Positions 1,207 to 26,684 of a DNA stretch of 32,659 nucleotides are shown here, in pieces. The first letter of the stretch is position 1; every line of letters begins with the position of its first letter. The notes under the pieces were generated by a model. The model ran no database searches, had not been told where the DNA came from, and saw only the letters and a list, made by a program, of their open reading frames with translations. The translations under genes and the position numbers were made by a program. Source of the DNA: Macrostomum lignano (Eukaryota); contig NIVC01004873.1 of assembly GCA_002269645.1 (NCBI GenBank), forward strand, positions 1 to 32,659. The letters are read 5' to 3'.

Positions 1207-2140
1207 GTGTTTAAAAAGAAATTTGTCAAACAGCAGCACAACAGTAACAGCTCTGAAAACTTCTTTATTTCACGCAACATATTGGCAGCTGCAGGTAAAA
1301 GTAAACGCAATTGTTATCTAAAGTACGTTACTACTAAAAATATCAATAAAACCAACTGCAAGACAGCAGAAACCGGTACATTAGCTTGGCTGGTACATAT
1401 TTGGAAGTTTTAAAATTCAATAAAAGTTATCACAGTTATTATCAGGACTCATAAAGCCTCCAATATTAGATGAGACAGATGAGTAGCAATGCATGCAATT
1501 GAGCACTGTCAAGCATCAGATTTGCAACAACTCACATGTTAAAGTCAAACACTTGAGAATGCTTTGAGTCAAACTGTCTGAATAGAACAGATACAAATCA
1601 TATTTTATTGGAGCACGGCTTAACAAATAAACTCTAACAGCAACTTTGAGTAGCCTCAAGCGGCAGAAGCTCTGATGAGACAAAAATCTGGTGCCAGCAT
1701 TCATGTTTAGAATGTCACCTGATTATTCGCTTATTCTTCACTTATTCACGAAGGTAGCCAGAATAACCTGGTAGCTTAGAAGTTAAACCCACAGATGAAC
1801 CTCCTAATCAATCATAATCACAGATTAACTCTACAAGCAGATTGGTGTCACCTCAGTTTGTGAGAGGAAAACCAAATCAACGCGTCAATGTAAAGTCTGC
1901 TAACAGAATTCACGAAAATTGGTGCTCCGAGTTTGTAACTGAAATTCTGAAATTTGGCAAAGCATGAAATTTCGTAAAGCAGATCCATTTAAAAATCAAA
2001 GACGAGCTCATTTTCTATTCTGTGCTCACAGGCTGCGGTAAAACAGCTCCAATTAATTGGTCCAACATGCAGATTATAAAAATAAAAATTTGTAATACAG
2101 CAAAAACATGGCGATAACAGGTAAATTCACAATCATCCGC
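1207..2140. repeat. Approximately 0.95-kb non-coding 3' spacer module, also at about 4368-5370, 18054-18980 and 20937-22005
   Basis: All four copies begin GTGTTTAAAA.GAAATTTGTC and share CCAACTGCAAGACAGCAGAAACCGGTACATTAGCTTGGCTGGT. Defines a basic gene+spacer unit of about 3.2 kb. Confidence 0.85.
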
Positions 2141-2142: not shown

Positions 2143-3678
2143 TCAATCAGCAGAACCAGTTGAAACTCGGTAAAATCTGATGGAGAGGCTTTCTTCCTGG
2201 CACACGGCAAGCAGCTCGGAGTGGCCTTCAACGATGGCCAAGCCATAAGGACGGTTTATTTTGTCTTCGCTACTGTCAGCCTCGCCCTCGACTCCGACAG
2301 TCTGCAGCACAGTGCCGTCACTACGCATCACACGAACCACATGATTAAAACACTCGCTGACGAACACCAGACCCGAGCGATGAGCAGCGACTCCTGCAGG
2401 ACTCTGAAGCTTATCAAAACGACTTCGCTTAGTCGGGTAGGTAGAGATCAGCTGACCGCTGTCAATGCACACTTTGTAGAGCTTACCAGCTTCCCAATCG
2501 GTAATCAGCACCGCATGGTCGATGATCGACATGGATTCGTGAAATATTTGTTCATAAGGCACGCCACCGACAGGAACGCAGGTCTGCAGCTGGCCGCTGT
2601 CTTTGTCGATGCACAGCAGCTGCATTTCCGAGCCGCTTTTGTCCAGAGCAATTATCTTGTCAGAGCTGCAGGTCAGCCCAATAAAAATCACAGGCCGTCC
2701 GAGGCTGCTCGAGTTGATCTCAAGCGACACCTGACCGCTCAGGTCCGACACCTTCACACAGTTTATCTGCGAGACGTACAGAGCTTGGCGCTTGCTGTCA
2801 CAGCAGAGTCCTGTGATTAGCGTGGACCAGTCGAGGTCGGCTTGAACTTTCAGCCTCACGGATCCGTCAATCGAACACGCGAGAAGGTAATCCAGATCGG
2901 ATCCCAAAGTAAAAGCTACGAACAGACACGTCTCGGGAAGCATCTGTGCACCATCGACCGCAGACTCCGCCTTCACCACTTTGCTGCCTGAAGCATCAGG
3001 GGAGAAGCCCTTCGTGTTGCTGCAGCATGAAACCCAAACAGGCGAACCATCGAGTCCCCGAATTTCGCTGTGGAACTCACAAATGCTCTGCTTCTCCTCG
3101 CTCAGCGGACCAACACTCTCGCACAGCTTCATCACATCGCTCAGCTGCCTGTCAATCAGCAGCTGCAAGTCTCTCACGCCTCCGCTCACGTCGCCAATGT
3201 CTCTGCCGACTTGCTCAAAGCTGTCTCTCTTTTCATCCAAGTCGCCGCACTCCGCACTCACTGCAGCTGAGAGTGAGAGCATTGTCTTCAGGTCAGCATT
3301 GGCCTCAGCTTCAGTAAGGCCAATCTCATACTCCTGCAGCACTGACAGCTCATTCAGCTTCTGCAGGCTGCTCTCATGTCTCACAGTCAATCGGTTGAGC
3401 ACAGATTCCTTGTAGGTGAGCAGCGACTCCACAGCCGACTCGAACAGCTGCTCGACGCTCTGCAGCTCGGCTGCCAGCGCTCGCTGATGAACTCGAAGGC
3501 CGTCTTGCAGACTCTTCAGCGGCTGCAGCTGCTCGAGCGCCTTCTGTGCGAGGTAGCGCACCGCGGCAGCGTCCTGAGCCACGTGTCTCTCGCACAGGGG
3601 CTCTGGGAGGCGAACGCCGGTACCGGTCGGGGCAGCGCTGCAGCCTCTGATGAAGCAGCTCGAGCTCGAGTCGGACAT
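2143..3678 (-). CDS. Paralog A1: intact 511-aa C3H-module/coiled-coil/NHL-like beta-propeller protein (RING-less TRIM-NHL-like)
   Basis: Open frame. The ATG at 3678 (MSDSSSS) is chosen over the ORF-track start 3717 because paralogs A2 and A3 start at the same Met. N-terminal CFIRGC-x15-CERH, heptad-rich helical segment, C-terminal NHL-like blades ([22 protein letters not shown]; RPYGLAIV; VLITDW..KLYKV). No introns. Confidence 0.85.
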
Positions 3679-5371
3679 TGTGCTTGAAGTCTTGAAGAAG
3701 GTGCTGAAAATGTGCAAAATCGTTTCAGTATCGAATCTGCCTGGCTAAAATACTTCATAATTGTTTCGATTGAAGTTTATCAGCTGCGGAAACACATCAG
3801 CATAGCGCAGGACCAGCTCAGTGACTTTGCAATACAAGAAGGGGATGTCAGCGCAGTCGAAATCCCAGAGCGGATTCTGTGCCGAATCCCATCGGATTGG
3901 CCCCAAGGGTGTCAGAAAATCCTCCTTTTCAGCTCCAGAAGGATGACTAAAGAAAATGAGGAACTTGTGCAACTTAAGCCGTACGAAATCGTAAGTATCT
4001 GAGTTTGAGTTCTTTGTGTTTACCTCATAAAATATGACACACTCAGCCCAGCTGCACGTCGCAAACAATGTCCTGTGTTCTCCAGACAGAGGTGTCCCAA
4101 CATGAACAGACAAGAACTCGGATATTTCTTGTCTTTGTGTCGAAATCTGAATGCTACAGGGCAATATTTTATACTTTCAGAGCTTATTTACTGACAAGAA
4201 GAGGGTGCAGAGAGCAGCTAGAAGAGCTCACATGGCGGGCAGAGAAGTTCTGCTCAGCCTTATGGCGGGTGGAGTCTCACTTTAGGCAGGGCAGCTGATA
4301 AAGTTTTGAGGGGTTTCAGGTCTACTCAACTGGCACTTGTTGATCATCTGATGCTGACTGCATGATCGTGTTTAAAATGAAATTTGTCAAACAGCATCAC
4401 AACAGTAACAGCTCTGCAAACTGATGTATTTGAGGCAACATTGGCTGCTGCTGGTAAAAGTACACGCAGTTGTTAGCTAAAGTACATCACTAGTCACAAA
4501 AAATCAATAAACCCAACTGCAAGACAGCAGAAACCGGTACATTAGCTTGGCTGGTAAAGATTTGGAAGTTTTAAAATTCAATAAAAGTTATCACAGATGT
4601 CATCAGGACTCATAAAAACCTTCAAGATTCGTTAGCTCGTAGTACAGATGAGTAGCAATGCATGCAATTGAGCACTGATCAGGCATCAGATTAGCAACAA
4701 CTCGCATGGTGCAGATAAACACTTGAGAATGCTTTGAGTCAAACTGTCTGTGCTGAATAACAAAGTCGTCAAACAAAGCCTTACGAAGCTGGCAGCCTTG
4801 ATTCTTCATCAGAGCAGCGCCTGAACTGCGCTGAGTTCGTCGACAAATCAGAAGATGTTTGAGTTTGGCCTAACAAATAAAATCCAATGGCCGAAATCTA
4901 TAGCCAGCATTCATGTCGAAATGCCACCTGATTTACTCGCTAATTCAACACTCATTCACCCAGGTAGCCAGAAGAACTTAGCTGCCACCAAGTTAAACTC
5001 ACAAATGAAACTCCCATTCATATTCTAGCAAAATCTAAACATTTTGGTGTCAGCTGAGTTTGTGCGAACAAAACCAATTAATAAATTAGTCAACGCCTCA
5101 ATGCAAAATCTGCAACCAAACTTGACAGAAATTTGCTACGGTACGTTGCAGTGGCAAGGATGGCACGAGATCGTGACTGAAATTGTCAAATTTTGTAAAG
5201 CAGATTCATTTAAAATCAAAGACGAGCTCCTTTTTTCCGTGCTTACGGACTACGGTAAAAAAGATTTAATTAATTGGTCCAGCACGCAGAATTTAAAAAT
5301 AAAATTTGTGATACAGCAAAAACATTCCAATTCACAGCTGAATGGAACTGCTGATTCACAATCATCCGCTG

Positions 5372-6906
5372 TCAATAGGCAGACCCAGTTGACACTCTGT
5401 AAAATCTGATGGACTTTCCATTCGGTTGGCAGACGGCAAGCAGCTCTGAGTCGCCTTGAACGATTGCCAAGCCACATGGATTGTCCATTCTATCTTCGCC
5501 ACTGCCGGCCTCACCCTCGACTCCAACAGTCTGCAGCACAGTGCCGTTACTTTGCATCACACGAACCACATCCCTTAACAACTCGCTGACAAACACCAGA
5601 CCCGAGCGATGAGCCGCGACTCCTGTAGGACTCAGAAGCTTATCAAGACGACTTCGCTTGGTCGGGTAGGTCGAGATCAGCTGACCGCTGGCGATGCACA
5701 CTTTGTAGAGCTTGTCAGCTGTCCAATCGGTGATCAGCACCGCATGGTCATAAAAAGACATGGATTCTGAGCGATCTGAAAACACAGGCACGTCACTGAT
5801 AGAAATGCAGGACTGCAGCTGGCCGCTGTCTTTGTCGATGCACAGCAGCTGCATTTCCGAGCCGCTTTTGTCCAGAGCAATTATCTTGTCAGAGCTGCAG
5901 GTCAGTCCCATAAATCTGACAGGCCGTCCGATGCTGCTCGACTCCATCTCAAGCGATACCTGACCGCTCAGGTCCGACGCCTTCACCCAGTTTTTTTGCG
6001 AGATGTACAGAGCTTGGCGCTTGCTGTCACAGCAAAGTCCTGTGATTGGCTTGGACCAGTCGAGGTCGGCTTGAACTTTCAGCCTCACGGATCCGTCAAT
6101 CGAACACGCGAGAAGGTAATCCAAATCATCAAACGATACGACCAGACACAGCTCGGGAAGCATCTGTGCCGCATCGACTGCAGGCTCCGCCTTCACCACT
6201 TTGCTGCCTGAAGCATCAGCGGAGAAGCCCTTCGTGTTGCTGGAGCATGAAATTAATTTAGGTTTACCATTGAGTTCTTGGATCTCGCTGTGAAACTCAC
6301 AAATGTTCAGCTCGCTCAGCAGACCAGCTGACTCGCACAGCTTCATTGCATCCTCAAAATGCCTGTCGATGCTCAGCTGCAAGTCTCTCAGAGCTCCGCA
6401 AACGTCGCCCAGCTTCACTTGTCCTTGTTCGTCTTCGCTAGACACCGCGTCCTCGAGATCGCAGCACTCCAGCTCCATGCGCGAGGACAGCTCAAGGCGC
6501 CTCGAAGGTCGCTGGCGCTTTCCGCCGCTGCTATCGAGCTGTCGAACTCCTGCAGCACTGCAAAGTCGCTCAGCTTCTGCCTTGCTGCGTCAGTTCTGGC
6601 AGTGAGTCGACTCGTCACAGCTTCCTTGTGCTTCATCAGCGACTCAATGGCGGCATTGAGCAGATCCTCAGCCACCTGTAGCTCTGCTTCCAACACCTGC
6701 ACGTCCATTCTTAGACGGTCGCGGACGAGCCTCAGAGGCTGCAGCCTCGCCTCAACTCTGTCATGAATTTCACGCACTCTGTCGGAGTCTCGGTCCAGGT
6801 GTCTCTGGCACAGAGGCTGCGGTGTCTGAGCTCCGATGCCAGAAGCTGCTTCGTTGCAGGTGGCCAGGGAGCAGCCCTGACTGCCTGCTTGAGTGGCTTC
6901 GGTCAT
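5372..6906 (-). pseudogene. Paralog B1: same architecture with B-type N-terminus (MTEATQAG); one 1-nt deletion near 6495 splits the frame (pseudogene or consensus error)
   Basis: ORFs 6415..6990 and 5372..6478 join. Between TCCATGCG and CCTCGAAG B1 has 18 nt where B2 has 19. Restoring one base gives 1536 nt (511 aa). CSLATC-x15-CQRH is present. Confidence 0.8.
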
Positions 6907-8520
6907 TGCTCTTCTGAGCTGAAGCGGAGAGGTTGGGAGAAGCTGAGAGGCATTGTGAATTATATGCTCAGGAAATTGCAGAAGCTGCACTTTTACAAGC
7001 GTAGTCAGGTGGAGGGGCTCAGAAACTCATCTGGCCTAAAATAATGGGCTGAAGAGCTCGTTGGAAATACCGATCTCTTTCAATCATGACATACTCGTAT
7101 TTTTTTTTTGTTCCCTACTAAAACTGAACATTCTGTCTCTCTCTCCTGCTGCTGCAGACGTAACTTGATACTATGAGAATGAGAATTTTAGAGAAAATCC
7201 CATGATTAAACTTTAAATGATGACAGAAAAGTTGCAGTCGTCCTCCTTGCACACTAGTGAGTCTTCAGCAAAGTTAATTAATAAATATTGGGTTTGCTGC
7301 TCGCTAAAGTTTGGTCTGGTGTAGTTATTTAACCACTTAGCATTGATCCAGAACAGAGTAGGATAATCAATACGAATTTATACTGAGAGTCAGTACAGAG
7401 TTTAATATAAAACTCTGTACTGAGGTATTAGCTGACCTGCATACAAGAACAATAGTAAGCATTAAAAAGGTACATAACTAAAAACATTTTAATCAAGCAA
7501 TAAAAGTCAAAAGTGCAGTATAATTTGAACTTCTAACTTTTATATAGAATTTGGTGCATATACCTTTTAGATCTATTGGATTTTTCACTGATGACTTTGT
7601 TTTCATTTTAAAAACAAGCCACTTTCAATGCTTCAAAAACCAGAAAATTTTCCATAAGTGTATTTAACTAATTCCTAATTCATTTATGCTTACAGATAAA
7701 TCGGAAATAAATACTGACCCATCTGTTTGTTCTGAGACACACTAAAACTTTAATACAATAAATTTTGTTTTTGTGTAAGGGTATTGTAAATTTTTACATT
7801 TGAATTGTAAGTTGAAGCAAGTTTACAGATTTATTGCAATTATTTGCATTTTGAAAATAAGTTAATTAAAAGCAAAGCTTGGATTGTGTCTGAGTCTGAG
7901 TTTTCTCTCTATTTGTTCCAAATTATAAATCGATTCATAACGCAGTCAAAGGTAAGGTAAGGTATATAAAACTTAATATTATTGTTCGGAATAAGTAATA
8001 GTATGCATGTCAGCATCGACACGTCGTATTGGCTATTTGTTTTAGTTAGCAACGCGCATACTGCTTCCTTTAATATTCGCTCGTACATAACCGTCTTTTC
8101 GAGTAAATATATAAATAAAACCACGACTAAGGTTTCAAGTTAAGCGCGTGCGCAACATACACTAATGAAAACAGTGAATAAGTAAAACAAAAAATGATTA
8201 TATATCGTTAATGTCTGTTAGTTCTTCAAGAGAGGTACAAGTGTAGCAATATATTATTTTACTACCAGCAAATATAATTGAACGATACTCTTTAAAATAC
8301 CTTTACAGTGCACCAACACTAACAAGGCAGAAGGCCTGGCTGCATGTGTGTGTTAAGAAATCGAACAAACATTTGAATTTGAATGCTCATTTGTATGTGA
8401 AACTGGAGGATGTGCATGTACAATTGAATTTCGTCTAATATGGTCGTTGTCCAGCTAGATGTACATGTACACGTAAACCAATTCCTGCCAGTGAAATATA
8501 TTTATTTGTTTGTACATGTA

Positions 8521-9120
8521 CCCGTGGCAGTGAGCAGGGCCGTGTGGCCGGGACGGAGGGGTGAGCTTCTGCCGGGGCCGCCAAAAGCGAACCGCCCAGC
8601 CCGGCAGCATGTCCCCGCGTCTACGTCAGCAGCACGAACCTCAATTTCTGCAACGAGAGTAATACAACCTACGTTCGACAACGGGCGGTGGGCCCAAGTC
8701 ATCGACATCCATGCACAATCGCATCACCTGCTGGACTGCTATTCACAGTCACAGGCGAGTGTGGGACGAGGACTCGCTCTCGGACCATCGTTTTATCCTC
8801 TTTTGCATCGGGCTGACCAAGCAAAAGCCGAAGGTCACCTGGAGCCGGAACTTCAGGAATACCCAAGCGATCAACGAGTTTAAAAGTCAAGTCAGAGGGC
8901 CAAGACGGCCGACCATGTGGCGCCAATAGTGCGGAGGGCTAATTGATGTCACTCAACCTGTAGCCCGAGTGGTAAACAGCACTCACGAGTGACCGTTTTT
9001 AAACTCTGTTGAGGAAGAAACCTGATATCGCTATTTCATTAAGAACTCTGCAGAGACGGCCTACAGACCTCATGGTCGAATCCTCGACCTAGAACGGCCC
9101 ATCTACCATGTGAGGGTTTC
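8521..9120 (+). mobile_element. Degenerate non-LTR retrotransposon fragment (APE endonuclease C-terminal half; LOA/R1-like wording of motifs)
   Basis: Across frameshifts, 8634-8880 reads TNLNFCNESNT-PTFDNGRWAQVIDI...LLFTVTG-RVWDEDSLSDHRFILF...RNFRNT, matching the APE motifs N-x-x-PTF, IDIT/L and SDH. No RT domain is visible. Outer limits are approximate. Confidence 0.75.
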
Positions 9121-9199
9121 CCGACAGATATTCAGACAGATATTCAAAACGATCATCTACTACTTTTAACAAAATGGACCAAACGAACCATATTTTTGG

Positions 9200-9870
9200 C
9201 AGATGTTTACGCATGTGTTTGCAATCAAATGAGCCCAAATTTGTTTTATAAAATAAAAAACTTTACGAAGTGCATTGTTTCAAAGATTGCTTGGCAACAC
9301 CCTGATTCAGCATCTCTTCAACGTTTTCTGAAAATGATTCAATTTTTACATCCCATAAATGTGCCCCGTATCCCAAAAAGACAATGGACTAACTCTTACG
9401 CATGTTTCAGCTGTAAAATGCCGCATCACGCGTCTAATAAAATACTTTACTTCTTGAATTATTTTCTTTTAAAGTGTGCTTGGAGATTTGCTTTTTTGAA
9501 GGCAAGTCAAGAAACAGCGCATATTTGCTGATGTCAGAACTCCATTTCGCTCTCAAATTAAATGAATTTATAGTTCCATTCTTACGCACATCCCAGCTTT
9601 AGAATGACACCATTGAAGCTGAAAAAGAAACAGTATTTCCTGAGATATTCGACTCTAAAGTGTGCTTTGCTTTTGAGTCAATAACGCTTGACGTTGTGTG
9701 TCGAAATATACGCCAAGAAATTGTGACACTATTTTTTGCTTACGAAACATAAAACTTAACTCGCTCTTTTACGCACGTCCCAGCTTTAAAATGACACCTC
9801 AGGCGTCGCCAAAGACGCCTCCGTTCGTGAGATATTCGACTCGAAACATTGCTCGGCGTGCAGGTTAGCT
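9200..9870. repeat. Degenerate tandem repeat of about 187 bp, about 3.5-4 units
   Basis: TTACGCA anchors at about 9207, 9396, 9582 and 9769; AAAG.TGCTT at about 9283, 9470 and 9657; GAGATATTCGACTC at about 9642 and 9830. Confidence 0.6.
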
Positions 9871-9874
9871 AACT

Positions 9875-10696
9875 CGCTGCCACCAGCCCGTACGTCCCGG
9901 CTCACCACCCCGGGACTCTCGAAATCGGGCTTCCGACTAGAAGGGGCTTTGCACTTACCTGCCAACTAGTGTCTTTTTGCTGTCAATCTCGAAGTCATAG
10001 CCGATGATAAGGGACACTGCTGGGACTAGATCGCATTGGCCATGCAGGTACAGAGGGGACTTGTGCAGGGGATTCTTGCAGTGGCGAGACTATGGGGTAG
10101 CTACATGTACTATTACATTGCTAAATACGAAGATATGTACTTTTGGCCTTCAACGCGCCAACTAGCCTCTCCTAGCGCTGATGATAGGCTAACTCGAACA
10201 TCGGAGACCGCATGATTCATTTACCCGAGCCGCTTGGCTACCCTAGAGTGCACAAAGTACATCTCTGGCGCCGATTCTGCACTACTGGCTGTTTTGCTCA
10301 CTGATTTGTTAGATTGATCGACTGAGAACTGCCTTGCCATTGGTTCACTGTGACCGGCGCCTACTAGCTTAGCTACTCATTTGAGCCATCGGCGAACAAA
10401 GAAATAAAACCGATAAAAATAACTGTTAGGGACTCGTCCTTGATGATGATGGGGGAGGTCGCAATCCGGGGATCAAGAAACGACGGTCGCGCTCCGGGAT
10501 GTCTCAATCTAGGCTAAGGTCCCAGGAGGAGTCGAGAGGAGCGCGGAGTTTGGTCCAAGCGGGCCAAAAACACCGGTTTAAATAGCCGCCAACTGGACCG
10601 CAGTTTGTTATAATGGAACACGTCAATTCTGATTCGCTAATCGCTAATCCCAAAGTACTTTTAGGGGTAAAACGCATAGCTGTCAAAGCTGTCACA
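9875..10696 (-). mobile_element. Possible truncated LTR retrotransposon end: LTR-like segment followed by a tRNA-Leu primer-binding site
   Basis: Minus strand starts TGTGACAG at 10696, has a TATA-like CTATTTAAA near 10580, and ends with TGGTGGCAGCG (9885-9875), complementary to the 3' end of eukaryotic tRNA-Leu(AAG/UAG) (...CGCUGCCACCA). No second LTR, TSD or gag-pol seen. Confidence 0.4.
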
Positions 10697-13600
10697 CGCT
10701 TGAGTGAACACGAACAATAGGCTCTGACCTCATAAATCTTGATGGCCTGTCAAAATGATGAGAAAAAAGCTACCGCCCGCATCCTCTCAGACCATCTGGC
10801 GGCCGCCTCAACACTGAGTGAGGCGCAGGTGGCTGTCAGACCAGCTTCGAAAGCGATGATTTATGACCCAAAAAGCTGCGCCTATGTTATTATGACTACT
10901 AGTATGACCAAACATTATATCTAGTATAGATTCTATGACAATTCGCAGAAAAATGATAAAAATGCCCATTGCCCACTGTTAGTAGGCTAGTAAGTTTAGA
11001 GCCCGTGTGCTAGCGCGGGGTTTGGAAAAAGCGCGGCCTCATCAAAAGCTTGCTGACATCTGAGAGGTTTTCTATTGTACTGCCTTCTATCAATACTCCT
11101 GTTCATATACTCAGTTGTACGCTCGCATATTGCTTTATCTACTGTTTTTTACTCGCATGTGCAAAGTTTTTTTAGTTTATCATTATAGTGCCAGCTGCTC
11201 CATGCAAAAGTTAAATACTACTCTCCACCAAGGGGGCGATGCACAAATGATAGCATCAAATGCAATTTGCGAATAATAATTTAGGGTATACTCGTAGCCT
11301 GAAAACCTGGATCTCTCAATGAAAAAACTGAAGAATAGTACCCACGCTTGTATAAGCCAAGAACAGCAAAGTTTTGAGCAATAAAACTGACTCTGATCTC
11401 TCCGAAACAAACACCGAATGTTAAATAATGACGTCAGCAGACTTTAAAGCTGTTAGCAGGCAGTCGCCTTTGTAAAACTCGTTTGAGACACTTTCTATCT
11501 ACTGAGAGAACTCGGCGAACTTTTGCCTGTCTGGATGAAGCTGAAGCTGAAAAATGATGACGGAGATTAAAGGCACAAAAACTTGCACAGTTCGTAACTG
11601 AATTTCATAAATATATTATGATTACACTGTAGCGCTGGCTATCAAAAGATGAAGAAGACTGATTAAGTTGAGCGAAAAGTTAAATCTCGGCTGGGGGGCG
11701 ATTGCGTCTATTTAATAAAAATAAAGTACAGTTAGTTTGGGGCTGCAACCGTAAGTTCGAGTTTGGGCCATAGACAACCTAGCTTGTGGGCAGTCAAAGA
11801 AAGTACTTTTTATGAGCTGCATGAGCTGTATATTCTGTGGAATGCAGTCATATTTGCGAAGGACGGCTGCACCTAAAACTTGCTGCGTAATTTGCAGTTT
11901 GTTCTGTGTAGCCTATAAGAGTTTACGTTCCCACGCGCCTGTTTGGCAGTGTTTTAAATAAAAAGGAGAGACAGTGGAGGCGCTCGCTTCACTTTTCTCT
12001 CGCCCGCATCTGCGGGCCTAAAGGCATGGCCATTGCCTCGGCTGGGCTGTAGGCCGCAGCAGCTGGGCCCAGGAAAACCGTGCTTCGAGTTCACTTCTTT
12101 GTTATCCGACGTGAGCAGAAGGTGCAGGATGGACGCAAAATCGTACCTGTTACAATGGTTCCCTGACCGCGTGAGTCTGCTAGATGAAGTTCCTGTCGCA
12201 AAGGATAACGGAGGGTCGAATAGAAGCCGGTTGAGGACAGCACAACATCAGCAAATCGAGATCCGGCGACCAGAGGACATCTTGCGTCGTTGGCGTGCTT
12301 GACGGCATTAAGTCGCAACCGGTGGTTCAGTTCAACTGCCACCACGGTGCAGCCGCCGCCCAAACTGACGCGTGTTCAACAGCCGTTCGGATGGATCGAC
12401 AAGAAGAGTCAGCCCCGACGTCACTGTCTCGGCGACCGGCATGCAGATCAATTTTCCTGCCCTGAGGAGACCGAATGAACGCAGACCGAATGAGACCGAA
12501 TGAACGCAGGGACCGTGGGAAAAAAGTCGCTACAACACCAATAGATTAGAAAATCTTGCTTACAACTCGATTGTCTAAAAAAAGAAGGTAGAATTCTCGC
12601 AATCGAAGACAGACGGAGGGCTTAACTTTAAAGGCCGATGTGATGGATCCTGGCAGTTATTTTTATAACATAAACTGAGAGTGGGTCTTTATAGAAAAAT
12701 TCTTAAAAGAAAGCTCCATTTCTCAGGTTCGCTTTTATCTTTGAGAAAGTTAAAACTCGGACAGCCTGCTGCTTTTCTGATTAATTATTTGATTTGCAGC
12801 CAGACATAAGTTGGTTGTACGTCAATCCAAGATAGTAATAAACACAAGTAAATTGTATCTTTTACGGATGTTTCTCTTATCTATTGACTTTTCATAGAGC
12901 AGCACCAATAGTTTGGCGCCCTGGTGATGAACCCCGATGCAATTGTCTCCGACCAGGAGAAACCGGGCCTGGCGCGAAGCACACCTCCCTCAGAAACGTC
13001 TTGAATTCAGCTCGCGCGGTACCTCAATTAAGGACACTGGACGAGCTGAGTTCTTCCTTACCGCCGGCGAGGAGGACCGGCGAGACCGACAGATCCTCCT
13101 GACAAGTTTTTGGTCACCAGAGACTGGCGGAATGGGGATTCTCCTCCGCCGCCACGCTGCATCCGCCAGTTGATGCGACCCCTGCAAGCTATAAGTTAAG
13201 TAATTTAAGAGGCTCCCTGCGTCACTCTTTGTCCTTGCAAGACCCCTGCCACTTCCGTCAGGTGGAGGCCCCCTGCGCACTCACCGTTATAGTGAGGCCA
13301 GGTAAGGTACACCGTTTGAGGAAAGTCAGGAAAATGAAAGGAGGCTCACCATAGTGAGGCTATAATAGTAGTTATAGTGAGGCTCACCACGTCACTCTGC
13401 GTTTTTTTGTGGCTCCCTGCCATACTATCCGTCGTGGTGAGGCTCCCTGCTTCACTTTCCGTTGTGCTGCGACTCTTAAAATCCTTATTATTTGTTAAGG
13501 TCTTAAAAGTATGTGCTCGTTTCTTCTGACCTACTTCAATATCCGTTTAAGTTTGACCTCGCATTCAATTTGTTTGTGTGCCACTTCATAGTCAGTCATT

Positions 13601-13834
13601 ATGCAATTCTGACTAATCGCCTCTCTTTTATAAGCATATTCCGCGGTGCTTTATATTGCTTGTATTTTAACATCAGTGTCCATTCGGAATGATAGATTCC
13701 TGCATGGAAAATCAGCCGACAATGCCATTTCGCTCAAATTCTGTCTAAATAAACTTAAAAACATCACATGATTTATGAACATCACAAAATCTGAAGCCTT
13801 TGAATACAAGAAGCAAAGTTTAGGAACTTAAGTA

Positions 13835-15055
13835 CACCATTTTACCTCCTATTTTGAACAAAGTCTTGTTCATAAGAAACAAGCAGAACTTCAATTCAAA
13901 CACTTTAAGAAATATCAGCGCTTGCGGAACTTCAATTCAAACAAAGTCCCTTTCTATTGAAACAGAAGAACTTCAATTCAGACTGTCTGTGGCCAAAATT
14001 GTCCCCGAGTGACGCGCATGTGCAGATTTGAAATTCAAAATAAACAAAGTCAAATTCACATTCGACAGAGATTTTTGCACATACATTTAGATACGAGAGT
14101 ACATTTTAGTACATTAATATAATTTTTTTTCCTGTACAGAATAACTGTACAATCGTTGCGCAACAAGAAACGATATGAACGCTGAAGATCAGATTGAAAA
14201 AGACGATGAATTGCTGAAAGATGGAATCGATTAATTTGAAGCAGATTCGATGAAGATATCATGGAACAGCAGCCTCGGAAGTACGCAATTGTAAGCAACA
14301 GTGACAGAGACTGTATCATCAGGGCTGCTGATCGTGAGGGTGACTTTGTGGAACTGGCGCGCCAACTTGAGTCAAGAGGTCAACAGCGTACACGATTGTG
14401 AGGTCAGGGAGAGCGGAAAAGCAGCCTACGAGATTCCGGACACCATTCAGGTCAAGCGGCTTCCACCCTACCACCATTTTGACTCCTGTGTGGAGAACTT
14501 AATCTCTGTTGGAAGGCCGCTATGAAGAGAGCAGACCAGCAAAATTTTATCGCTCCGACAGCTGAGTAGCACGGCAATCAGTCGATGGCGGCCTATCGGC
14601 GAGACATTCTGTCATGCTGGACAGAACAATTGGCTGCATCTCTGTGGACAAGAGCACTGAGGGGTTCAACCATGTGTTTACATACGTCCCTCGCTGCCTT
14701 GGTGTTGGTGGACAGGCAATTGATGGTTAGATGTCTCAAGTTGGCCAACTGACACTGTCTTGTTCCTGTTTTTAATTTTACTCTTTATGTTCGTCGATAT
14801 GCTGTGTTTTATCCCTTTGTCGAAATAAAATGTGACTTTGTTTCTTTTGAATTTCAAATCTGCGCATGCACGTCGAGTCATTCGGGGACAATTTTGGCCA
14901 CAGACAGTCTGAATTGAAGTTCTTCTGTTTCAATAGAAAGGGACTTTGTTTGAATTGAAGTTCCGCAAGCGCTGATATTTCTTAAAGTGTTTGAATTGAA
15001 GTTCTGCTTGTTTCTTTTGAACAAGACTTTGTTCGAAATAGGAGGTAAAATAGTG
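13835..15055 (+). mobile_element. Internally deleted IS630-Tc1-mariner DNA transposon with long TIRs (about 220-230 bp) and TA target duplication
   Basis: TA|CACCATTTTACCTCCTATTT ... AAATAGGAGGTAAAATAGTG|TA. Each TIR carries three GAACTTCAATTCA sub-repeats. From 14261 a frameshifted HTH reads MEQQPRKYAIVSNSDRDCIIRAADREGDFVELARQL(G)VKRSTAYTIVR, joined near 14430 to C-terminal IQVKRLPPY..PF(L)TPVEN..WKAAMKR and ISVDKSTEGFNHVFTYVPRCL. Confidence 0.85.
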
Positions 15056-15749
15056 TAGTAAGATTAACTAGCTCCGTCATCAAGCAGATTTTTTAGCATT
15101 AAACAGCATGGACCAGTCTCTTGTTTTGTGATAACTCTGTCAATTGAAAATCCAACCTCATAGTCCAAGCTTCCAAAAACCTACACTTCCCTACCTCTTA
15201 TGCTCTTCCAGAGAAACTCCCTGAAAAGATTTCTGCTGATGAAAAGTCGTCCAGTTCGTGCACCAGACGCCCGATTGAACACTCAGCAGAATCGCATCTA
15301 CAACTACAGGCTGCTTCATTCTCCATCATCAGTGACGGTGCCAGCATCCGCGGTCCCCTACAGTACAGTGGCCAGCAAAGTCGCGTTAACAGTGGAACAA
15401 GAAGAACTTTAAAAGCGGATACCATTAACGAACAGAAACAAAGTGCTTGCCACTAGATCAGTGAAGCGCAATATGTTATAGCTGTATTGTCATTTATCTA
15501 CGCTCGTAGTTAGCGCATAAACGCTTTGTTGAAAGCCTTTGACAACAAGTCAAAGAGCTCCTTTTCTATGCCGCACCCACGGGCCAGAGTAAAAACGTTC
15601 CACTTGGTTTACTCGTACTAAAATAGTATAGTCTGGAAAAACTATTCGATTTGTCAAGCACGCCGATTCTAAAAAATAGCAATTCGTGATAAGGCAAAAA
15701 AATGAAGATTCACAGCTAAATCAAACAGCTAATTCACAACCATCAGCTG

Positions 15750-17285
15750 TCACACAGCAGAACCAGTTGAAACTCGGTAAAGACTGATGGAATCTCTATT
15801 CGGTTGGCACACGGCAAGCAGCTCGGAGTGGCCTTCAACGATGGCCAAGCCACACGGATTGTGCATTCTGTCCCCGCAACTGCCAGCCTCACCCTCGACT
15901 CCGACAGTCTGCAGCACAGTGCCGTCACTACGCATCATTCGTACCACATGCCTATCAAACTCGCTGACGAACAACAGACCTAAGCGATGAGCTGCGACTC
16001 CTGCAGGACTCTGAAGCTCATCAAGACGACTTCGCTTGGTCGGGTAGGTCGAGATCAGCTGACCGCTGGCGATGCACACTTTGTAGAGCTTTTGAGCTTC
16101 ATAATCAGTGATCAGCACCGCATGGTCAATGACCGATGTGGATTCGTAGAAGTTATTAATAGAAGGCACGCAACCGACGAAAATGCAGGTCTGCAGCTGG
16201 CCGCTGTCTTTGTCGATGCACAGCAGCTGCATTTCCGAGCCGCTTTTGTCCAGAGCAATTATCTTGTCAGAGCTGCAGGTCAGCCCCATAAATCTGACAG
16301 ACCGTACGCCGAGGCTGCTCGAGTTGAACTCGAGTGAAACCTGACCGCTCAGGTCCGACACCTTGACCACGTTTTTCTGCGAGATGTACAGAGCTTGGCG
16401 CTTGCTGTCACAGCTGAGTCCTGTGATTAGCTTGGACCAGTCGAGGTCAACCCGAACTTTCAGCCTCACGGATCCGTCAATCGAACACGCGAGAAAATAA
16501 TGTAGTTTTGATAGTGGATAAAAAGCTACAAACAGACACGGCTCGGGAAGCATCTGTGCACCATCGACCGCAGACTCCGCCTTCACCACTTTGCTGCCTG
16601 AAGCATCAGGGGAGAAGCCCTTCGTGTTGCTGCAGCATGAAACCCAATCAGGCGAACCATCGAGTCCCTGGATCTCGCTGTGGAACTCACAAATGCTCTG
16701 CTTCTCGCTCAGCGGACCAACACTCTCGCACAGCTGCATCACATCGCTCAGCTGCCTGTCAATCAGCAGCTGCAAGTCTCTCACGCCTCCGCTCACGTCG
16801 CCAATGTCTCTGCCGACTTGCTCAAAGCTGTCTCTCTTTTCATCCAAGTCGCCGCACTCCGCACTCACTGCAGCTGAGAGTGAGAGCAATGTCTTCAGGT
16901 CAGCATTGGCCTCAGCTTCAGTAAGGCCAATCTCATACTCCTGCAGCACTGACAGCTCATTCAGCTTTTGCAGGCTGCTCTCATGTCTCACAGTCAATCG
17001 GTTGAGCACAGATTCCTTGTAGGTGAGCAGCGACTCCACAGCCGACTCGAACAGCTGCTCGACGCTCTGCAGCTCGGCTGCCAGCGCTCGCTGATGAACT
17101 CGAAGGCCGTCTTGCAGACTCTTCAGCGGCTGCAGCTGCTCGAGCGCCTTCTGTGCGAGGTGGCGCACCGCGGCAGCGTCCTGAGCCAGGTGTCTTTCGC
17201 ACAGGGGCTCTGGGAGGCGAACGCCGGTGCCGGTCGGGACAGCGCTGCAGCCTCTGATGAAGCAGCTCGGGCTCGAGTCAGACAT
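15750..17285 (-). CDS. Paralog A2: intact 511-aa C3H/coiled-coil/NHL-like protein with A-type N-terminus and B1-like C-terminal blades
   Basis: Open 1536-nt frame. N-terminal half nearly identical to A1. C-terminus ([17 protein letters not shown]) resembles B1. Confidence 0.88.
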
Positions 17286-18981
17286 TGTGCTTGAAGAATG
17301 GCGCTGAAAATTTGCAAAATCGTTTTGATACTTTGAATGCGCCTGGCTAAAATGCTTTTATAGTTGTTTCGAGCACGACCAGCTTAGTGACTTTTACAAC
17401 ACAGGAAGGGGATGTCAGCTTAGTCGAAATACCAGAGCAGATTCTGCTCTGAATCCCATCTGATTGTGTAGAGTATCATTAATTAAAAAATGCTACTATT
17501 AGTACAATAATGCAAACATGAGGAGCAAAACTTAATCTATGAGCTAAGTTACTATTTTTATCGAAAACTATGAAACATCTATTTATAACAAAAAGAGGAA
17601 TTGTGTACGATATACACGATATATACCGAAAGGATGGTTTAGGTTGCTATTTATATTTCGCAAAACTTGTCTATAAATACAAGCGAAAAATCCGAGCTGA
17701 AATCTCAGACTCGGAGCAGCCTCGACTTGAGCACACCCAGGAACTACGAGGCTACATGTACATCTCTGAGAGAAGTAGATGCCGTTCGGTAAGCCTTTGT
17801 TCAAGTTTTCGTTATTTGATTATTGAGAGCGATTTTATTGACGGCCGTTACTGTTCAGTTGAATTTACTGAATTTTTTTGAATTTGAGGCCTCCCTATTC
17901 CTAAGGGATTGGATAGGATCTGCGGACCGATTCCAATACCCTTAGAGGATTATCAATTGATGATTTTGGTACCCTAGAGTAACCGATAGGGGCACACGAC
18001 TCCGATTCCGTTATTTAAAGAAGAAGACGCCCTTTCTTGAGAACCTCGAATCTGTGTTTAAAAAGAAATTTGTCAAACAGCAGCACAACAGTAACAGCTC
18101 TGAAAGCTTCTTTATTTCACGCAACATATTGGCAGCTGCAGGTAAAAGTAAACGCAATTGTTATCTAAAGTACGTTACTACTAAACATATCAATAAAACC
18201 AACTGCAAGACAGCAGAAACCGGTACATTAGCTTGGCTGGTACATATTTGGAAGTTTCAAAATTCAATAAAAGCTATCACAGATATTATCAGGACTCATA
18301 AAGCCTCCAATATTAGATGAGACAGATGAGTAGAAATGCATGCAATTGAGCACTGTCAAGCATCAGATTTGCAACAACTCACATGGTAAAGTCAAACACT
18401 TGAGAATGCTTTGAGTCTGAATAGAACAGATACAAATCATATTTTATTGGAGCACGGCTTAACAAATAAACTCTAACAGCAACTTTGAGTAGCCTCAAGC
18501 GGCAGAAGCTCTGATGAGACAAAAATCTGGCGCCAGCATTCATGTTTAGAATGTCACCTGATTATTCGCTTATTCTTCACTTATTCACGAAGGTAGCCAG
18601 AATAACCTGGTAGTTTAGAAGTTAAACCCACAGATGAACCTCCTGATCAATCATAATCACAGATTAACTCTACAAGCAGATTGGTGTCACCTCAGTTTGT
18701 GAGAGGAAAACCAAATCAACGCGCCAATGTAAAGTCTGCTAACAGAATTCACGAAAATTGTGTGCTCCGAGTTTGTAACTGAAATTTTGAAATTTGGCAA
18801 AGCATAACAATTTCGTAAAGCAGATCCATTTAAAAATCAAAGACGAGCTCATTTTCTATTCTGTGCTCACAGCTGCGGTAAAAAGCTCCAATTAATTGGT
18901 CCAACATGCAGATTATAAAAATAAAAATTTGTAATTCAGCAAAAACATGGCGATAACAGGTAAATTCACAATCATCCGCCG

Positions 18982-20508
18982 TCAATCAGCAGAACCAGTT
19001 GAAACTCGGTAAAATCTGATGGAGAGGCTTTCTTCCTGGCACACGGCAAGCAGCTCGGAGTGCCCTTCAACGATGGCCAAGCCATACGGATGGTTTATTT
19101 TGTCTTCGCTACTGTCAGCCTCGCCCTCGACTCCGACAGTCTGCAGCACAGTGCCGTCACTACGCATCACACGAACCACATGATTAAAACACTCGCTGAC
19201 GAACACCAGACCCGAGCGATGAGCAGCGACTCCTGCAGGACTCTGAAGCTTATCAAAACGACTTCGCTTAGTCGGGTAGGTAGAGATCAGCTGACCGCTG
19301 TCAATGCACACTTTGTAGAGCTTACCAGCTTCCCAATCGGTAATCAGCACCGCATGGTCGATGATCGACATGGATTCGTCAAATATTTGTCCATAAGGCA
19401 CGCCACCGACAGAAACGCAGGTCTGCAGCTGGCCGTTGTCTTTGTCGATGCACAGCAGCTGCATTTCCGAGCCGCTTTTGTCCAGAGCAATTATCTTGTC
19501 AGAGCTGCAGGTCAGCCCCATAAATGTGACTGGCCGTCCGAGGCTGCTCGAGTTGATCTCGAGCGACGCCTGACCGCTCAGGTCCGACGCCTTCACCAGT
19601 TTTTTGCGAGATGTACAGAGCTTGGCGCTTGCTGTCACAGCTGAGTCCTGTGATTGGCGTGACCAGTCGAGATCGACATGAACTTTCAGCCTCACGGATC
19701 CGTCAATCGAACACGCGAGAAGGTAATCCAGATCGGATAGCAAATAAAAGCTACGAACAGACACGGCTCGGGAAGCATCTGTGCACCATCGACCGCAGAC
19801 TCCGCCTTCACCACTTTGCTGCCTGAAGCATCAGCGGAGAAGCCCTTCGTGTTGCTGCAGCATGAAACCCAAAGAGGCAACTATCGAGTCTGGATCTCGC
19901 TTGGAACTCACAAATGCTCTGCTTCTCCTCGCTCAGCGGACCAACACTCTCGCACAGCTTCATCACATCGCTCAGCTGCCTGTCAATCAGCAGCTGAAGT
20001 CTCTCACGCCTCCGCTCACGTCGCCAATGTCTCTGCCGACTTACTCAAAGCTGTCTCTCTTTTCATCCAAGTCGCCGCACTCCGCACTCACTGCAGCTGA
20101 GAGTGAGAGCAATGTCTTCAGGTCAGCATTGGCCTCAGCTTCAGTAAGGCCAATCTCATACTCCTGCAGCACTGACAGCTCATTCAGCTTCTGCAGGCTG
20201 CTCTCATGTCTCACAGTCAATCGGTTGAGCACAGATTCCTTGTAGGTGAGCAGCGACTCCACAGCCGACTCGAACAGCTGCTCGACGCTCTGCAGCTCGG
20301 CTGCTAGCGCTCGCTGATGAACTCGAAGGCCGTCTCGCAGACTCTTCAGCGGCTGCAGCTGCTCGAGCGCCTTCTGTGCGAGGTAGCGCACCGCGGCAGC
20401 GTCCTGAGCCACGTGTCTCTCGCACAGGGGCTCTGGGAGGCGAACGCCGGTACCGGTCGGGGCAGCGCTGCAGCCTCTGATGAAGCAGCTCGGGCTCGAG
20501 TCAGACAT
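18982..20508 (-). pseudogene. Paralog A3: close copy of A1 with several small deletions totalling 9 nt (pseudogene or consensus error)
   Basis: ORFs 20041..20508, 19692..19880 and 18982..19764 are pieces of one gene. Deletions at about 19996, 19900, 19875-19890, 19745, 19661 and 19596-19606. Span is 1527 nt versus 1536 nt in A1. Confidence 0.8.
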
Positions 20509-22007
20509 TGTGCTTGAAGAATGGCGTTGAAAATGTGCAAAAAGTTTTCAATATATCGAATGCGCCAGGCTAAAATGCTTCATTATTGTTTTGATAGAAA
20601 ATGGATCAGCTGCGGGAGACACTGCATCAGCATTGCGCAGGACCAGCTCAGGGACTTTTACAACACCGAAAAAAGATGTCAGCTTAGTCGAACTACCGGA
20701 GCGGATTCTGTGCCGAATCCCATCGGATTGGCCACGAGGGTGCAGAGTCATAGAAAATCCCAGGTCTCAGCCTCAGTAGGTTAATTGGGGAGAACATAAG
20801 AAATCTTAAGTATCTGAGAGCTTGAGTTTTTTTAATTTACCTCATCAAATGATGCCTTCAGCTTAGCTCAGTCTTGAGGGGTTTCGGATCTACTCAGCTG
20901 GCACTTGTTGCTCTGTCTGATGCTGATTGCATGATCGTGTTTAAAATGAAATTTGTCGAACAGATCACAACAATAACAGCTCTGCAAACTGATGTATTTG
21001 AGGCAACATTGGCTGCTGCTGGTAAAAGTACACGCAGTTGTTAGCTAAAGTACACCACTAGTCACAAAAAATCAATAAACCCAACTGCAAGACAGCAGAA
21101 ACCGGTACATTAGCTTGGCTGGTAAAGATTTGGAAGTTTTAAAATTCAATAAAAGTTATCACAGATGTCATCAGGACTCATAAAAACCTTCAAGATTCGT
21201 TTGCTCGTAGTACAGATGAGTAGCAATGCATGCAATTGAGCACTGATCAGGCATCAGATTAGCAACAACTCACATGGTGCAGTCAAACACATGAGAATGC
21301 TTTGAGTCAAACTGTCTGAGCTGAATTAAAAAGACGTCAAACAAAGCCTTACGAAGCTGGCAGCCTTGGTTCTTCATCAGAGCAGCGCCTGAACTGCGCT
21401 GAGTTCGTCGGCAAATCAGATGATGTTTGAGCTCGGCCTAACAAATAAAATCACACAGCCAAAATCTAGAGCCAGCATTCATGTCCGGAATGCACCTGAT
21501 TTATTCGCTAATTCAACACTCGTTCACCCAGGTAGCCAGAAGAACTTAGCTGCCACCAAGTTAAACTCACAAATGAAACTCCCATTCATATTCAAGCAAA
21601 ATCTAAATTTAATAATCAAATAATCAAATTTGATTATTTAATAATTAATAAATCTAAATCTAAATCAGCAACAGCGAACAACTTGTAACAGCGAAACCAT
21701 ATCAACGCCTAAATGCAAAATCTGCAACCAATTTCACCAAGTTTGGACTGAAATTCTCAAAATTGGTGAAACAGATCCATTTAAAAGTCAAAGACGAACT
21801 CATTTTCTCTGCTGAAGTCATGGTTAAGGTAAAAATCCGCTTTGTTATACAAAATTACTACTGTTACCAGGCACAAATTCTAAAACTATAATGGTCAAGC
21901 TTCAATTCATGTGTCAAAACACGCAGAGCATAAAAATAGTACATTTTGATAAAGCAAAAACATGCAGATGCAGAGCTGAATCGAAAGGTGATTTACAGTC
22001 ATTTGTG

Positions 22008-23554
22008 TCACACGGCAGAACCATTTGAAACTCGGTAAAATCTGATGGACAGTCCTTCCTGCTGGCACACGGCAAGCAGCTCTGAGTCGCCTTCGACGGT
22101 GCCCAAGACACACGGACAGTGCATTTTGTCTCGGCCTCTGCCAGCCTCGCCCTCGACTCCGACAGTCTGCAGCACAGTGCCGTCACTTTGCATCACACGA
22201 ACCACATGCCTATTATACTCGCTGACGAACACCAGACCTGAACGATGAGCCACAACTCCTGCAGGACTCAGAAGCTCATCAAGACGACTTCGGCTTGTCG
22301 GGTAGGTCGAGATCAGCTGACCGCTGACGATGCACACTTTGTAGATCTTTTTAGCTGCCCAGTCAGTGATCAGCACCGCATGGTCGATGACCGACATGAT
22401 TCCGAGCGATCTGGGGAACTGGGCACGCCACCGACAGAACGCAGGTCTGCAGCTGGCCGCTGTCTTTGTCGATGCACAGCAGCTGCATTTCCGAGCCGCT
22501 TTTGTCCAGAGCAATTATCTTGTCAGAGCTGCAGGTCAGCCCCATAATCTGACAGGCCGTCCGAGGCTGCTCGAGTTGATCTCGAGTGACACCTGACCGC
22601 TCAGGTCCGACACCTTGACCACGTTTTTCTGCGAGATGTACAGAGCTTGGCGCTTGCTGTCACAGCTGAGTCCTGTGATTGGCGTGACCAGTCGAGGTCG
22701 ACTTGAACTTTCAGCCTCACGGATCCGTCAATCGAACACGCGAGAAGGTAATCCAGATCGGATCGCAAATCAAAAGCTACGAACAGACACGGCTCGGGAA
22801 GCATCTGTGCACCATCGACCGCAGACTCCGCCTTCACCACTTTGCTGCCTGAAGCATCAGCGGAGAAGCCCTTCGTGTTGCTGCAGCATGAAACCCAAGC
22901 AGGCGCACCATCGAGTTCTTGGATCTCGCTGTGGAACTCACAAATGCTCTGCTTCTCCTCTCTCAGCGGACTAACACTCTCGAACAGCTTCATCACGTCC
23001 TCGAACTGCCTGTCGATGCTCAGCTGCAAGTCTCTCAGAGCTCCGCAAACGTCGCCCAGCTTCAGTCGTCCTTGTTCGTCTCCACCAGACACAGCGTTTT
23101 CGAGATCGCTGCACTCCAGCTCCATGCGAGAGCACTGCTCAAAGATGCCTCGAAGATTGTTGGCGCTTTCCGCCGCTGCCATCGAGCTGTCGAACTCCTG
23201 CAGCACTGCGAAGTCGCTCAGCTTCTGCCTTGCTGCGTCAGTTGTGGCAGTGAGTCGATTCGTAACAGCTTCCTTGTGCTTCATCAGCGACTCAATGGCG
23301 GCATTGAGCAGATCCTCAGTGACCTGTAGCTTCGCTTCTAGCGCCTGCGAGTCCATTCTTAGCAGGTCGCGAACGAGCCTCAGAGGCTGCAGCCTCGCTT
23401 CGACTCTGGCATGAATTTCGCGCACTCTGTCGGAGTCTCGGTCCAGGTGTCTCTGGCACAGAGGCTGCAGTGTCTGAGCTCCGGTGCCAGCAGCTGCTTC
23501 GCTGCAGGTGGCCAGGGAGCAGCGCCGACTGCCTGCTTGAGTGGCTTCGGTCAT
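22008..23554 (-). pseudogene. Paralog B2: B-type N-terminus with A-like linker and first blades; four 1-nt deletions (pseudogene or consensus error)
   Basis: ORFs 22601..23554, 22363..22545 and 22008..22514 join. Deletions near 22685, 22546, 22437 and 22400-22420. Restoring four bases gives 1551 nt, a multiple of three. Confidence 0.78.
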
Positions 23555-26209: not shown

Positions 26210-26224
26210 GTGAGTCTTGGATAT

Positions 26225-26684
<460 letters not shown>

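Follow-up and report, generated by a model that had tools for sequence, protein, structure and literature searches.

Does a tandem array of closely related propeller genes encode a recognition system under selection for diversity, or can such an array acquire a variable binding face by other means? The question is raised by a 32,659-nucleotide stretch of genomic DNA from the free-living flatworm Macrostomum lignano (contig NIVC01004873.1, hereafter the window), which contains five paralogous genes, all on the minus strand and each a single open reading frame (ORF) of about 511-516 codons: copies A (2143-3678), B (5372-6906), C (15750-17285), D (18982-20508) and E (22008-23554). A preliminary description of the locus, made from its sequence, had noted that near-invariant stretches of the encoded propellers alternate with short divergent patches, and had proposed that these patches lie on the ligand-binding face and diversify under selection, as in immune or anti-transposon receptors. 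As described below, the variation is concentrated on the predicted top face, and the signal for selection fades once mosaic ancestry and site-rate variation are taken into account. We lean toward the view that this is a functional paralog family in which loop diversity stems from weak constraint together with divergence limited by gene conversion.

Divergent patches on a predicted NHL-type propeller

The pattern that prompted the question is readily recovered. The peptides quoted in the preliminary description lie at their described places on the minus strand, together with the divergent patches and both in-frame indels, and a near-invariant stretch of 27 residues is encoded in all five copies, with copy E of the window out of frame there through 1-nt gaps in DNA that is otherwise identical. 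While the description of five copies holds as to the pattern, the sequences amount effectively to four distinct propellers, D being about the same as A, and are joined to two very different N-terminal halves. The alternation of invariant and variable sequence is far beyond chance: 213 columns vary among the 975 nt shared by the copies, the longest invariant run is 93 nt as compared to a permutation mean of 23.5 and a maximum of 71 (10,000 permutations), the dispersion index is 2.27 versus 0.77 (p<1e-4), and even third codon positions are clustered, with 34 of them invariant in a row (p=5e-4). One invariant framework block, a blade segment (35 protein letters) located at 2581-2676 of the minus strand in copy A, with equivalents at 5813-5908 in B and 16191-16286 in C (both minus strand), differs by only 0-1 nt among the paralogs, synonymous sites included.

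The patches are carried by the C-terminal domain of a protein with three recognizable parts. In copy A, a CCCH motif (C-x4-C-x15-C-x2-H; 3583-3657, minus strand) that is kept across the wider family is preceded by only seven residues at the protein start and is followed by a long predicted helix (3115-3591, minus strand) and an NHL-type beta-propeller (2149-3084, minus strand; codons 199-510). AlphaFold, supplied with the family alignment, places the helix at residues 31-189 and the propeller at residues 200-510, the latter with a predicted local distance difference test score (pLDDT) of about 90. The helical region is continuous over residues 31-127, 131-145 and 152-189 and has low pLDDT, as expected for a monomer model; by analogy with TRIM proteins, this helix of ~160 residues is presumed to form a dimerising coiled coil. 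A second AlphaFold model, made for a sister-clade protein, has an identical strand layout. A phmmer search of the PDB matched the NHL domains of Thin, TRIM71, TRIM2 and TRIM3 with E-values of 4e-8 to 4e-4 (4e-8 to 2e-6 for the first three), and Foldseek returned target-normalised template modelling (TM) scores of 0.70-0.76 to the NHL domains of Thin, TRIM71, TRIM3, TRIM2 and Brat and 0.78 to the six-bladed Pizza6, versus 0.52-0.58 to seven-bladed WD40 proteins. The Pfam NHL model is matched below threshold (E=0.077 in copy A), and the identification needed the PDB, profile and fold searches together; the family profile itself matches thousands of NHL-repeat proteins. The C-terminal domain is thus predicted to be a six-bladed NHL-type propeller, in line with the preliminary description. 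A seven-bladed propeller was considered, as suggested by the 26 strands that DSSP assigns, but the fold search favours six blades; blade I remains uncertain. No RING domain was matched by Pfam at E<=1 in copies A, C and E or at E<=0.1 in ten wider family members, no zf-B_box match was found in the same three copies or in wider family members, and neither a NACHT nor a WD40 domain was above threshold in the copies or in wider family members. The 'RING-type' and 'B box-type' labels that UniProt attaches to distant members were not confirmed by Pfam. No N-terminal signal sequence is obvious.

In NHL propellers the b-c and d-a loops make up the top surface by definition, and the a-b and c-d loops the bottom (PMC4015489). 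Loop classes were assigned a priori from the DSSP strands of the AlphaFold model and this topology rule, with the register of blades II-VI anchored by PxGhhh as strand a, hhVxD/E as strand b and the glycine turn between strands c and d. Among copies A, B, C and E, variable sites make up 44 of 80 top-loop positions, 30 of 136 strand positions and 9 of 57 bottom-loop positions, and the excess in top loops over the remainder (39 of 193) is significant by the Fisher test (p=4e-8), with the caveat that constraint is inherently lower on the long d-a loops than on the tight glycine turns of the bottom face. Sites with at least three states are distributed likewise (19/80 in top loops, 5/136 in strands and 2/57 in bottom loops), and the bias persists when only blades II-VI are counted (33/63 versus 33/155, p=1.6e-5). 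An array of the sister subclade, located on other contigs and serving as an independent replicate, has the same top-loop bias (p=1.5e-4; blades II-VI, p=1.6e-5). The proposal that the variation is concentrated on the predicted top face is therefore borne out in both arrays.

The patches, all on the minus strand, can be followed blade by blade. The d-a loop between blades III and IV comprises ten residues in copy A (2533-2562) around an 18-nt core (2539-2556; equivalent cores at 5768-5785 in B and 16146-16163 in C). The b-c loop of blade IV reads WEAG in A (2485-2496), WTAD in B (5714-5725), YEAQ in C (16092-16103) and WAAK in E (22350-22361), and that of blade V reads CFNH (A, 2341-2352), LLRD (B, 5570-5581), FDRH (C, 15948-15959) and YNRH (E, 22206-22217). 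The d-a loop between blades V and VI has 14 residues in A (2251-2292), the second half of which is variable and modelled with low pLDDT, and the b-c loop of blade VI reads EESL (A, 2185-2196), PNGK (B, 5414-5425), PNRD (C, 15792-15803) and QEGL (E, 22050-22061). A further variable loop with an in-frame indel (TLGSDLDY; 2887-2910 in A) is a candidate b-c loop of blade I, an assignment less certain than those in blades II-VI.

The analogy that had been drawn to RNA binding by Brat and LIN-41 found no such support. RNA-binding TRIM-NHL proteins have uniformly basic top faces (PMC4015489). While a conserved basic TKRSR stretch is present here, the net charge of the top loops, counted from loop sequence and not as a surface potential, is -7 in A, -9 in D, +2 in C, -2 in B and 0 in E, and ranges from -6 to +4 in the sister array. 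With charges that run from -9 to +4, Brat-like RNA binding is therefore not indicated.

Neutral rates, mosaic ancestry and the tests for selection

If the top face were diversifying under selection, its nonsynonymous rate (dN) might be expected to exceed its synonymous rate (dS). Taken together, the loops of the top face evolve about as fast as expected under neutrality: they have dN 0.276 and dS 0.280 (ratio, omega, 0.99), as compared to dN 0.067, dS 0.199 and omega 0.34 in strands and dN 0.047, dS 0.088 and omega 0.53 in bottom loops. The proportion of nonsynonymous differences (pN) in top loops, 0.23, lies within the range of copy-to-copy mismatch in the 3' flanks (0.15-0.24). For the d-a loops taken separately omega is 0.86 in the window, with an interval that spans 1, and 0.73 in the sister array.

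The history of the copies is reticulate. There are two N-terminal halves, type I in A, C and D and type II in B and E, which are separated by a dS of about 1.4; from about codon 185 on, dS is only 0.16-0.25 for every pair of copies. All 205 informative sites in the N-terminal half support the grouping AC|BE, and past column 570 the 42 informative sites are split 14/17/11 among the three quartet groupings and occur in clusters, with AB|CE at columns 902-985, AC|BE inside patch 1 and AE|BC in the last b-c loop. Copy D is A-like, but its middle segment matches its neighbour E. Exchange appears to have reached beyond the array as well. Three framework blocks (codons 336-345, 355-365 and 398-418, corresponding to 2644-2673, 2584-2616 and 2425-2487 of the minus strand in copy A) are nearly identical across arrays: dS between subclades is about 1.1 (1.12 outside the blocks) and 0.245 within them, and B and C have 63 identical nucleotides in common with genes on another contig. 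This cross-array identity implies either inter-locus gene conversion or an unknown constraint at the nucleotide level. RNA secondary structure was considered as a cause of the invariant blocks and rejected (z-scores of -0.14 and +0.20). Codons that vary only synonymously lie nearer to codons with amino-acid changes than invariant codons do (1.85 versus 3.52 codons, p=6e-4). The mosaic copies, and the blocks made alike from locus to locus even where changes would be silent, are most simply explained by gene conversion in short tracts, both inside an array and from one array to another; such conversion keeps the constrained framework uniform and is halted at the diverged patches.

Such ancestry bears directly on site-model tests. 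Models M1a and M2a were compared for the A/B/C/E quartet with a self-written codon likelihood of the MG94 type, which covers few taxa and has not been benchmarked against PAML or HyPhy. On a single tree the likelihood ratio test (LRT) is strongly positive (LRT 75, p=5e-17, with an omega2 of about 17 at 6% of sites), and it is still positive under a mixture of the three quartet topologies (LRT 33, p=7e-8). When three site-rate classes, acting on synonymous and nonsynonymous changes alike, are added to the topology mixture, the LRT falls to 3.1 (p=0.21). The log-likelihoods are -2620.97 for M1a with rate variation (16 parameters), -2623.79 for M2a without it (14 parameters) and -2619.40 for M2a with it (18 parameters). 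These three models differ by no more than 4.4 log-likelihood units, too little for the data to separate a class of sites with omega above 1 from variation in rate among sites. In the sister array, with six paralogs, the LRT is 0.06; omega is 1 at 62% of sites and close to 0 at the other 38%. The diversifying selection proposed in the preliminary description is thus not supported: the top-loop ratio matches synonymous and flanking divergence, and the site-model signal is lost in one array and absent from the other. In qualitative terms, a site-model test of the kind that description proposed would be positive for reasons other than selection. The locus is a clear case in which a standard test of the M1a/M2a type is strongly positive and the signal is gone once mosaic ancestry and synonymous-rate variation are modelled.

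Several observations weigh against a reading without selection for diversity. The single-tree and mixture-of-topologies results just given are two of them. The b-c loops have omega above 1 as a point estimate in both arrays (1.19 [0.48-3.16] in the window and 1.44 [0.53-5.8] in the sister array), and the patch-1 core of A and C differs at 10 of 18 nt despite a dS of 0.03 between their N-terminal halves. These M2a signals, b-c ratios and patch-1 divergence would also fit real diversifying selection. Finally, the top and bottom classes on which all loop comparisons depend derive from DSSP strands and the topology rule, not from coordinates, and the assignment is insecure for blade I and residues 200-233.

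Among the short cores, that of the III-IV loop (18 nt) stands out. It differs at 17/18 positions between A and B, at 15/18, 14/18 and 13/18 in further pairs, at 10/18 between A and C and at 7/18 between B and E, with 0-1 differences in the adjoining 96 nt. The ~75% expected at saturation is reached or exceeded by most of the core values, and even the lowest (7/18, or 0.39, for B-E) exceeds the synonymous and flank divergence of 0.15-0.24. The core looks like an old or replaced fixed-length cassette rather than the product of stepwise point substitution. Import from the sister subclade was considered as its source and rejected, as the patch-1 sequences are not shared with that subclade, and no patch donor was found among annotated proteins.

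The alternative closest to the original proposal is an adaptive repertoire, in which the top loops diversify under selection against fast-changing targets (viral or transposon RNA or proteins, or mating or allorecognition cues) and conversion shuffles loop cassettes between copies. The hypervariability of the binding face in two arrays, the reticulate sharing of patches between copies, and patch cores that are far above synonymous and flank divergence are all consistent with it, as are the preference for M2a when site-rate variation is left out, with the sites of high posterior (375-377, 398 and 498) in top loops, and an architecture analogous to that of finTRIMs (PMC2657112) and of the fungal HNWD propellers (PMC1805685). 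Set against this are the collapse of the LRT with site-rate variation, the sister array with most of its sites at omega=1, a class-wide omega of about 1 with wide confidence intervals, and the co-clustering of nonsynonymous with synonymous changes; moreover, no paper on these gene identifiers, or on Macrostomum together with NHL genes, was found in the library searched. We regard the adaptive repertoire as a tentative possibility.

Under the reading that we favour, a functional paralog family with weakly constrained loops, the family would evolve by duplication, gene loss and frequent short-tract gene conversion, and the two types of presumed coiled coil, with a dS of about 1.4 between them, are old. 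Judging from what is known of TRIM and NHL proteins, the helix would dimerise and the top face would bind a ligand, such that the array may encode a handful of versions of one scaffold with differing top faces and, most likely, differing ligand preferences. Weak constraint on the loops and conversion that stalls at diverged patches would suffice for the loop variation, with a few short cores, chiefly the 18-nt III-IV core, appearing to have diverged far beyond neutral expectation as if replaced as cassettes. At a few sites, positive selection for diversity may play a part as well.

Integrity, transcription and surroundings of the copies

Loop variation could also be devoid of functional meaning. 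In a neopolyploid, redundant genome, surplus duplicates may decay, and the variation would then represent the first stage of pseudogenisation. Duplicated blocks account for 180 Mb of the M. lignano assembly (PMC5730564), the reading frame is disrupted in three of the five window copies, other arrays include gene fragments, copy D has a stop codon shared between locus versions, and the gene-wide omega is 0.5-0.7. The state of the individual copies argues otherwise. The same locus is present on two further contigs, NIVC01001356.1 (99.3% identity) and NIVC01004574.1 (98.2%), and the frame-breaking 1-nt gaps, many of them in homopolymers, change between these three locus versions that are 98-99% identical. 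Copies A and C (both type I) have intact ORFs of 511 codons. The translation of C is essentially identical to BOX15_Mlig005855g1, its counterpart on NIVC01001356.1, and every close relative that was found is from M. lignano. Exact-sequence look-ups of A and C were empty, the window being a third version of the locus, distinct from the deposited contigs. Copy B (type II) is interrupted by a single 1-nt gap within a run of CCC (alignment column 422), and its counterpart on NIVC01001356.1 has no gaps over the portion that the contig covers. In the window, copy E (type II) is interrupted by four 1-nt gaps, of which three fall within homopolymer runs; the copy is intact on NIVC01004574.1 (516 amino acids, BOX15_Mlig034286g1). 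Because the gaps in B and E are mostly homopolymer contractions and are absent from the near-identical contigs, most of them are probably consensus errors, and copy B is probably intact in reality. More generally, ORF status in this assembly should not, without read support, be the basis for calling pseudogenisation.

Copy D differs from the others. It has an in-frame TAA at codon 156, present in two of the three locus versions, and several frame-breaking gaps, with gaps outside homopolymers; ahead of its start codon the CAG acceptor is replaced by CAA (see below). It is probably a pseudogene. For the family as a whole, decay is an unlikely account of the loop variation, and we would place it low: A, C and the haplotig copies of E have remained intact over 511-516 codons at a dS of about 0.2, four of six full-length ORFs from sister arrays are intact (the other two have a single in-frame stop), the strands retain an omega of 0.34, and 30-55% of sites are assigned to a class with omega 0-0.2. 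Transcript-based gene models, discussed next, point the same way, and it is the intact ORFs together with the models for the counterparts of C and E that support function.

The deposited annotation of M. lignano is transcript-based (PMC5730564). In the gene models for the counterparts of C and E, the start coincides exactly with a CAG acceptor; the model for C begins immediately after TTTTCAG, 18 nt upstream of the ATG. A polypyrimidine-CAG acceptor is conserved 10-30 nt upstream of the ATGs (3700-3710, 17305-17315 and 23565-23575), with CAA in copy D as noted above. Because transcript-based models begin right at the acceptor, this arrangement argues for expression of at least the C and E counterparts, and spliced-leader trans-splicing is probable; the reading covers these two counterparts, as the deposited contigs end before A and B. 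On other contigs, adjacent family genes have a common transcription-unit prefix with differing g-numbers (Mlig012638g4, g5, g6 and g8), which hints that some arrays are transcribed as polycistronic precursors (PMC5730564).

A technical origin of the patches, through mis-assembly of collapsed paralogs, or a local origin through targeted hypermutation, is also conceivable, as extreme local divergence stands beside identical DNA and the region contains many 1-nt consensus errors. The same patches, however, are found near-identical on the two other contigs, which belong to a different assembly record, all substitution types are present in the patches, no reverse transcriptase or other relevant ORF was found near the array, and an Rfam search of the window gave no match. 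We consider either origin most improbable.

By self-comparison, A+B and D+E form a segmental duplication, with 94-95% identity across A/D and the intergenic DNA and 86% across B/E, and copy C stands alone behind an 8.8-kb spacer. A Pfam search of the spacer (7-15.7 kb) and of other ORFs returned no domains, the spacer has no recognizable gene, and there was no sign that the array lies inside a transposon. A non-coding element of ~375 bp is located 0.6-1 kb downstream of A (1207-1580, minus strand), B (4368-4750), D (18054-18417) and E (20937-21319), with a mean column identity of 89% over the four copies. It is absent downstream of C and better conserved than parts of the coding sequence. It is part of the duplicated unit and may be a 3' untranslated region end or a regulatory element. 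The spacer also holds a 243-bp inverted repeat (13833-14070 and 14815-15057, 92.6% identity) upstream of the C-D-E group, which may be a foldback element or resemble a miniature inverted-repeat transposable element. Beyond the array, a gene for a rhodopsin-family G protein-coupled receptor with at least two exons (25487-26236 and 29005-29667, plus strand) matches Pfam 7tm_1 with E=1e-20 over transmembrane segments (TM) 1-5 and 3e-5 over TM6-7, and the 2.8 kb between its exons are filled with tandem repeats. Dense simple and minisatellite arrays occupy 26220-26685, 27195-27647, 29794-30467, 30868-31453 and 32002-32659 and comprise (GATA)x116 as well as 20/38/98-nt, 33-nt, 24/100-nt and 26-nt units, and a strong skew of C over G begins at 29 kb.

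Family extent and known recognition systems

A profile search of 1.8 billion representative proteins yielded about two dozen full-length clusters at 50% identity. Of the 20 that were checked, all are from M. lignano save two sets of short environmental contigs; these contigs, from the Joint Genome Institute (JGI) and about 2 kb long, encode homologs 35% identical to copy A. The family is therefore not confined to the laboratory line. Further tandem arrays, gene fragments included, are found on NIVC01000989.1 and NIVC01003604.1. Altogether this is a large, RING-less family of TRIM-NHL descent that has been pared down to a zinc motif, a presumed coiled coil and an NHL propeller, known so far almost only from M. 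lignano. A literature search on oyster TRIM-NHL expansions returned nothing usable, and no prior description of an NHL-based family of this kind was found in the library searched.

The closest relatives by descent are the TRIM-NHL proteins (Brat, LIN-41/TRIM71, TRIM2/3, Thin, Mei-P26 and NHL-2), while fish finTRIMs and primate TRIM5 and the HNWD genes of Podospora are closest by logic. TRIM-NHL proteins place a coiled coil before a six-bladed NHL propeller, a layout that the presumed coiled coil and the propeller of the proteins described here would match, and TRIM-NHL proteins provide the best sequence and fold matches among solved structures. Unlike them, the M. lignano proteins have only the CCCH motif, with RING and B-box not detectable and the Pfam NHL match below threshold. 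Brat also lacks a RING domain. With no RING detected in the M. lignano proteins, no E3 ligase function is therefore expected. A further difference lies in number and in the top face: dozens of paralogs stand in tandem arrays, and their top face is variable instead of conserved, with a loop charge that is not uniformly basic. TRIM-NHL proteins bind through the top face, which comprises the b-c and d-a loops (PMC4015489).

The finTRIMs of fish and TRIM5-type proteins of primates likewise use a TRIM-type scaffold in tandem arrays and concentrate variation in the loops of a C-terminal recognition domain (PMC2657112). The tandem multigene arrays and the concentration of variation on the predicted ligand-binding surface are both found here. 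The recognition domain differs, however, being a B30.2/SPRY domain with hypervariable loops in finTRIM and TRIM5 and an NHL propeller here, and positive selection is robust in finTRIMs (PMC2657112) and not shown here. In the WD40 repeats of the Podospora HNWD/NWD genes (het-d, het-e), as here, the framework is homogenised within and between loci through concerted evolution and a few positions on the interaction face are hypervariable (PMC1805685, PMC2873952). There, repeats within one NLR-type gene are exchanged, whereas here whole paralogs exchange short tracts and no NACHT/NLR architecture is present; positive selection at four sites per repeat has been demonstrated in HNWD (PMC1805685, PMC2873952), while the evidence here is ambiguous.

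A bolder extension of these parallels would see the family as a germline-encoded variable receptor repertoire of flatworms built on NHL propellers, in which the framework blocks act as homology anchors for cassette-like exchange of loops and the coiled-coil classes set the pairing of subunits, for combinatorial intracellular recognition of, for example, viral or transposon RNA. We think this rather unlikely, and put the immune-like reading forward as a hypothesis. The immune or anti-transposon roles suggested in the preliminary description, and its idea that the coiled coil lets different specificities be combined, are speculative.

TRIM-NHL proteins are otherwise few in each genome and are conserved regulators, each with a conserved binding face. 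In one lineage, a stripped-down TRIM-NHL protein has been multiplied into tandem arrays, with a variable binding face and a framework kept uniform through gene conversion. If the loop differences alter ligand choice, this family would parallel the finTRIM/TRIM5 and fungal WD40 recognition families and be the first to do so with an NHL domain. To our knowledge, innate recognition in flatworms is almost unknown; under the same condition, the family would provide a lead into it, in a species for which transgenesis is available.

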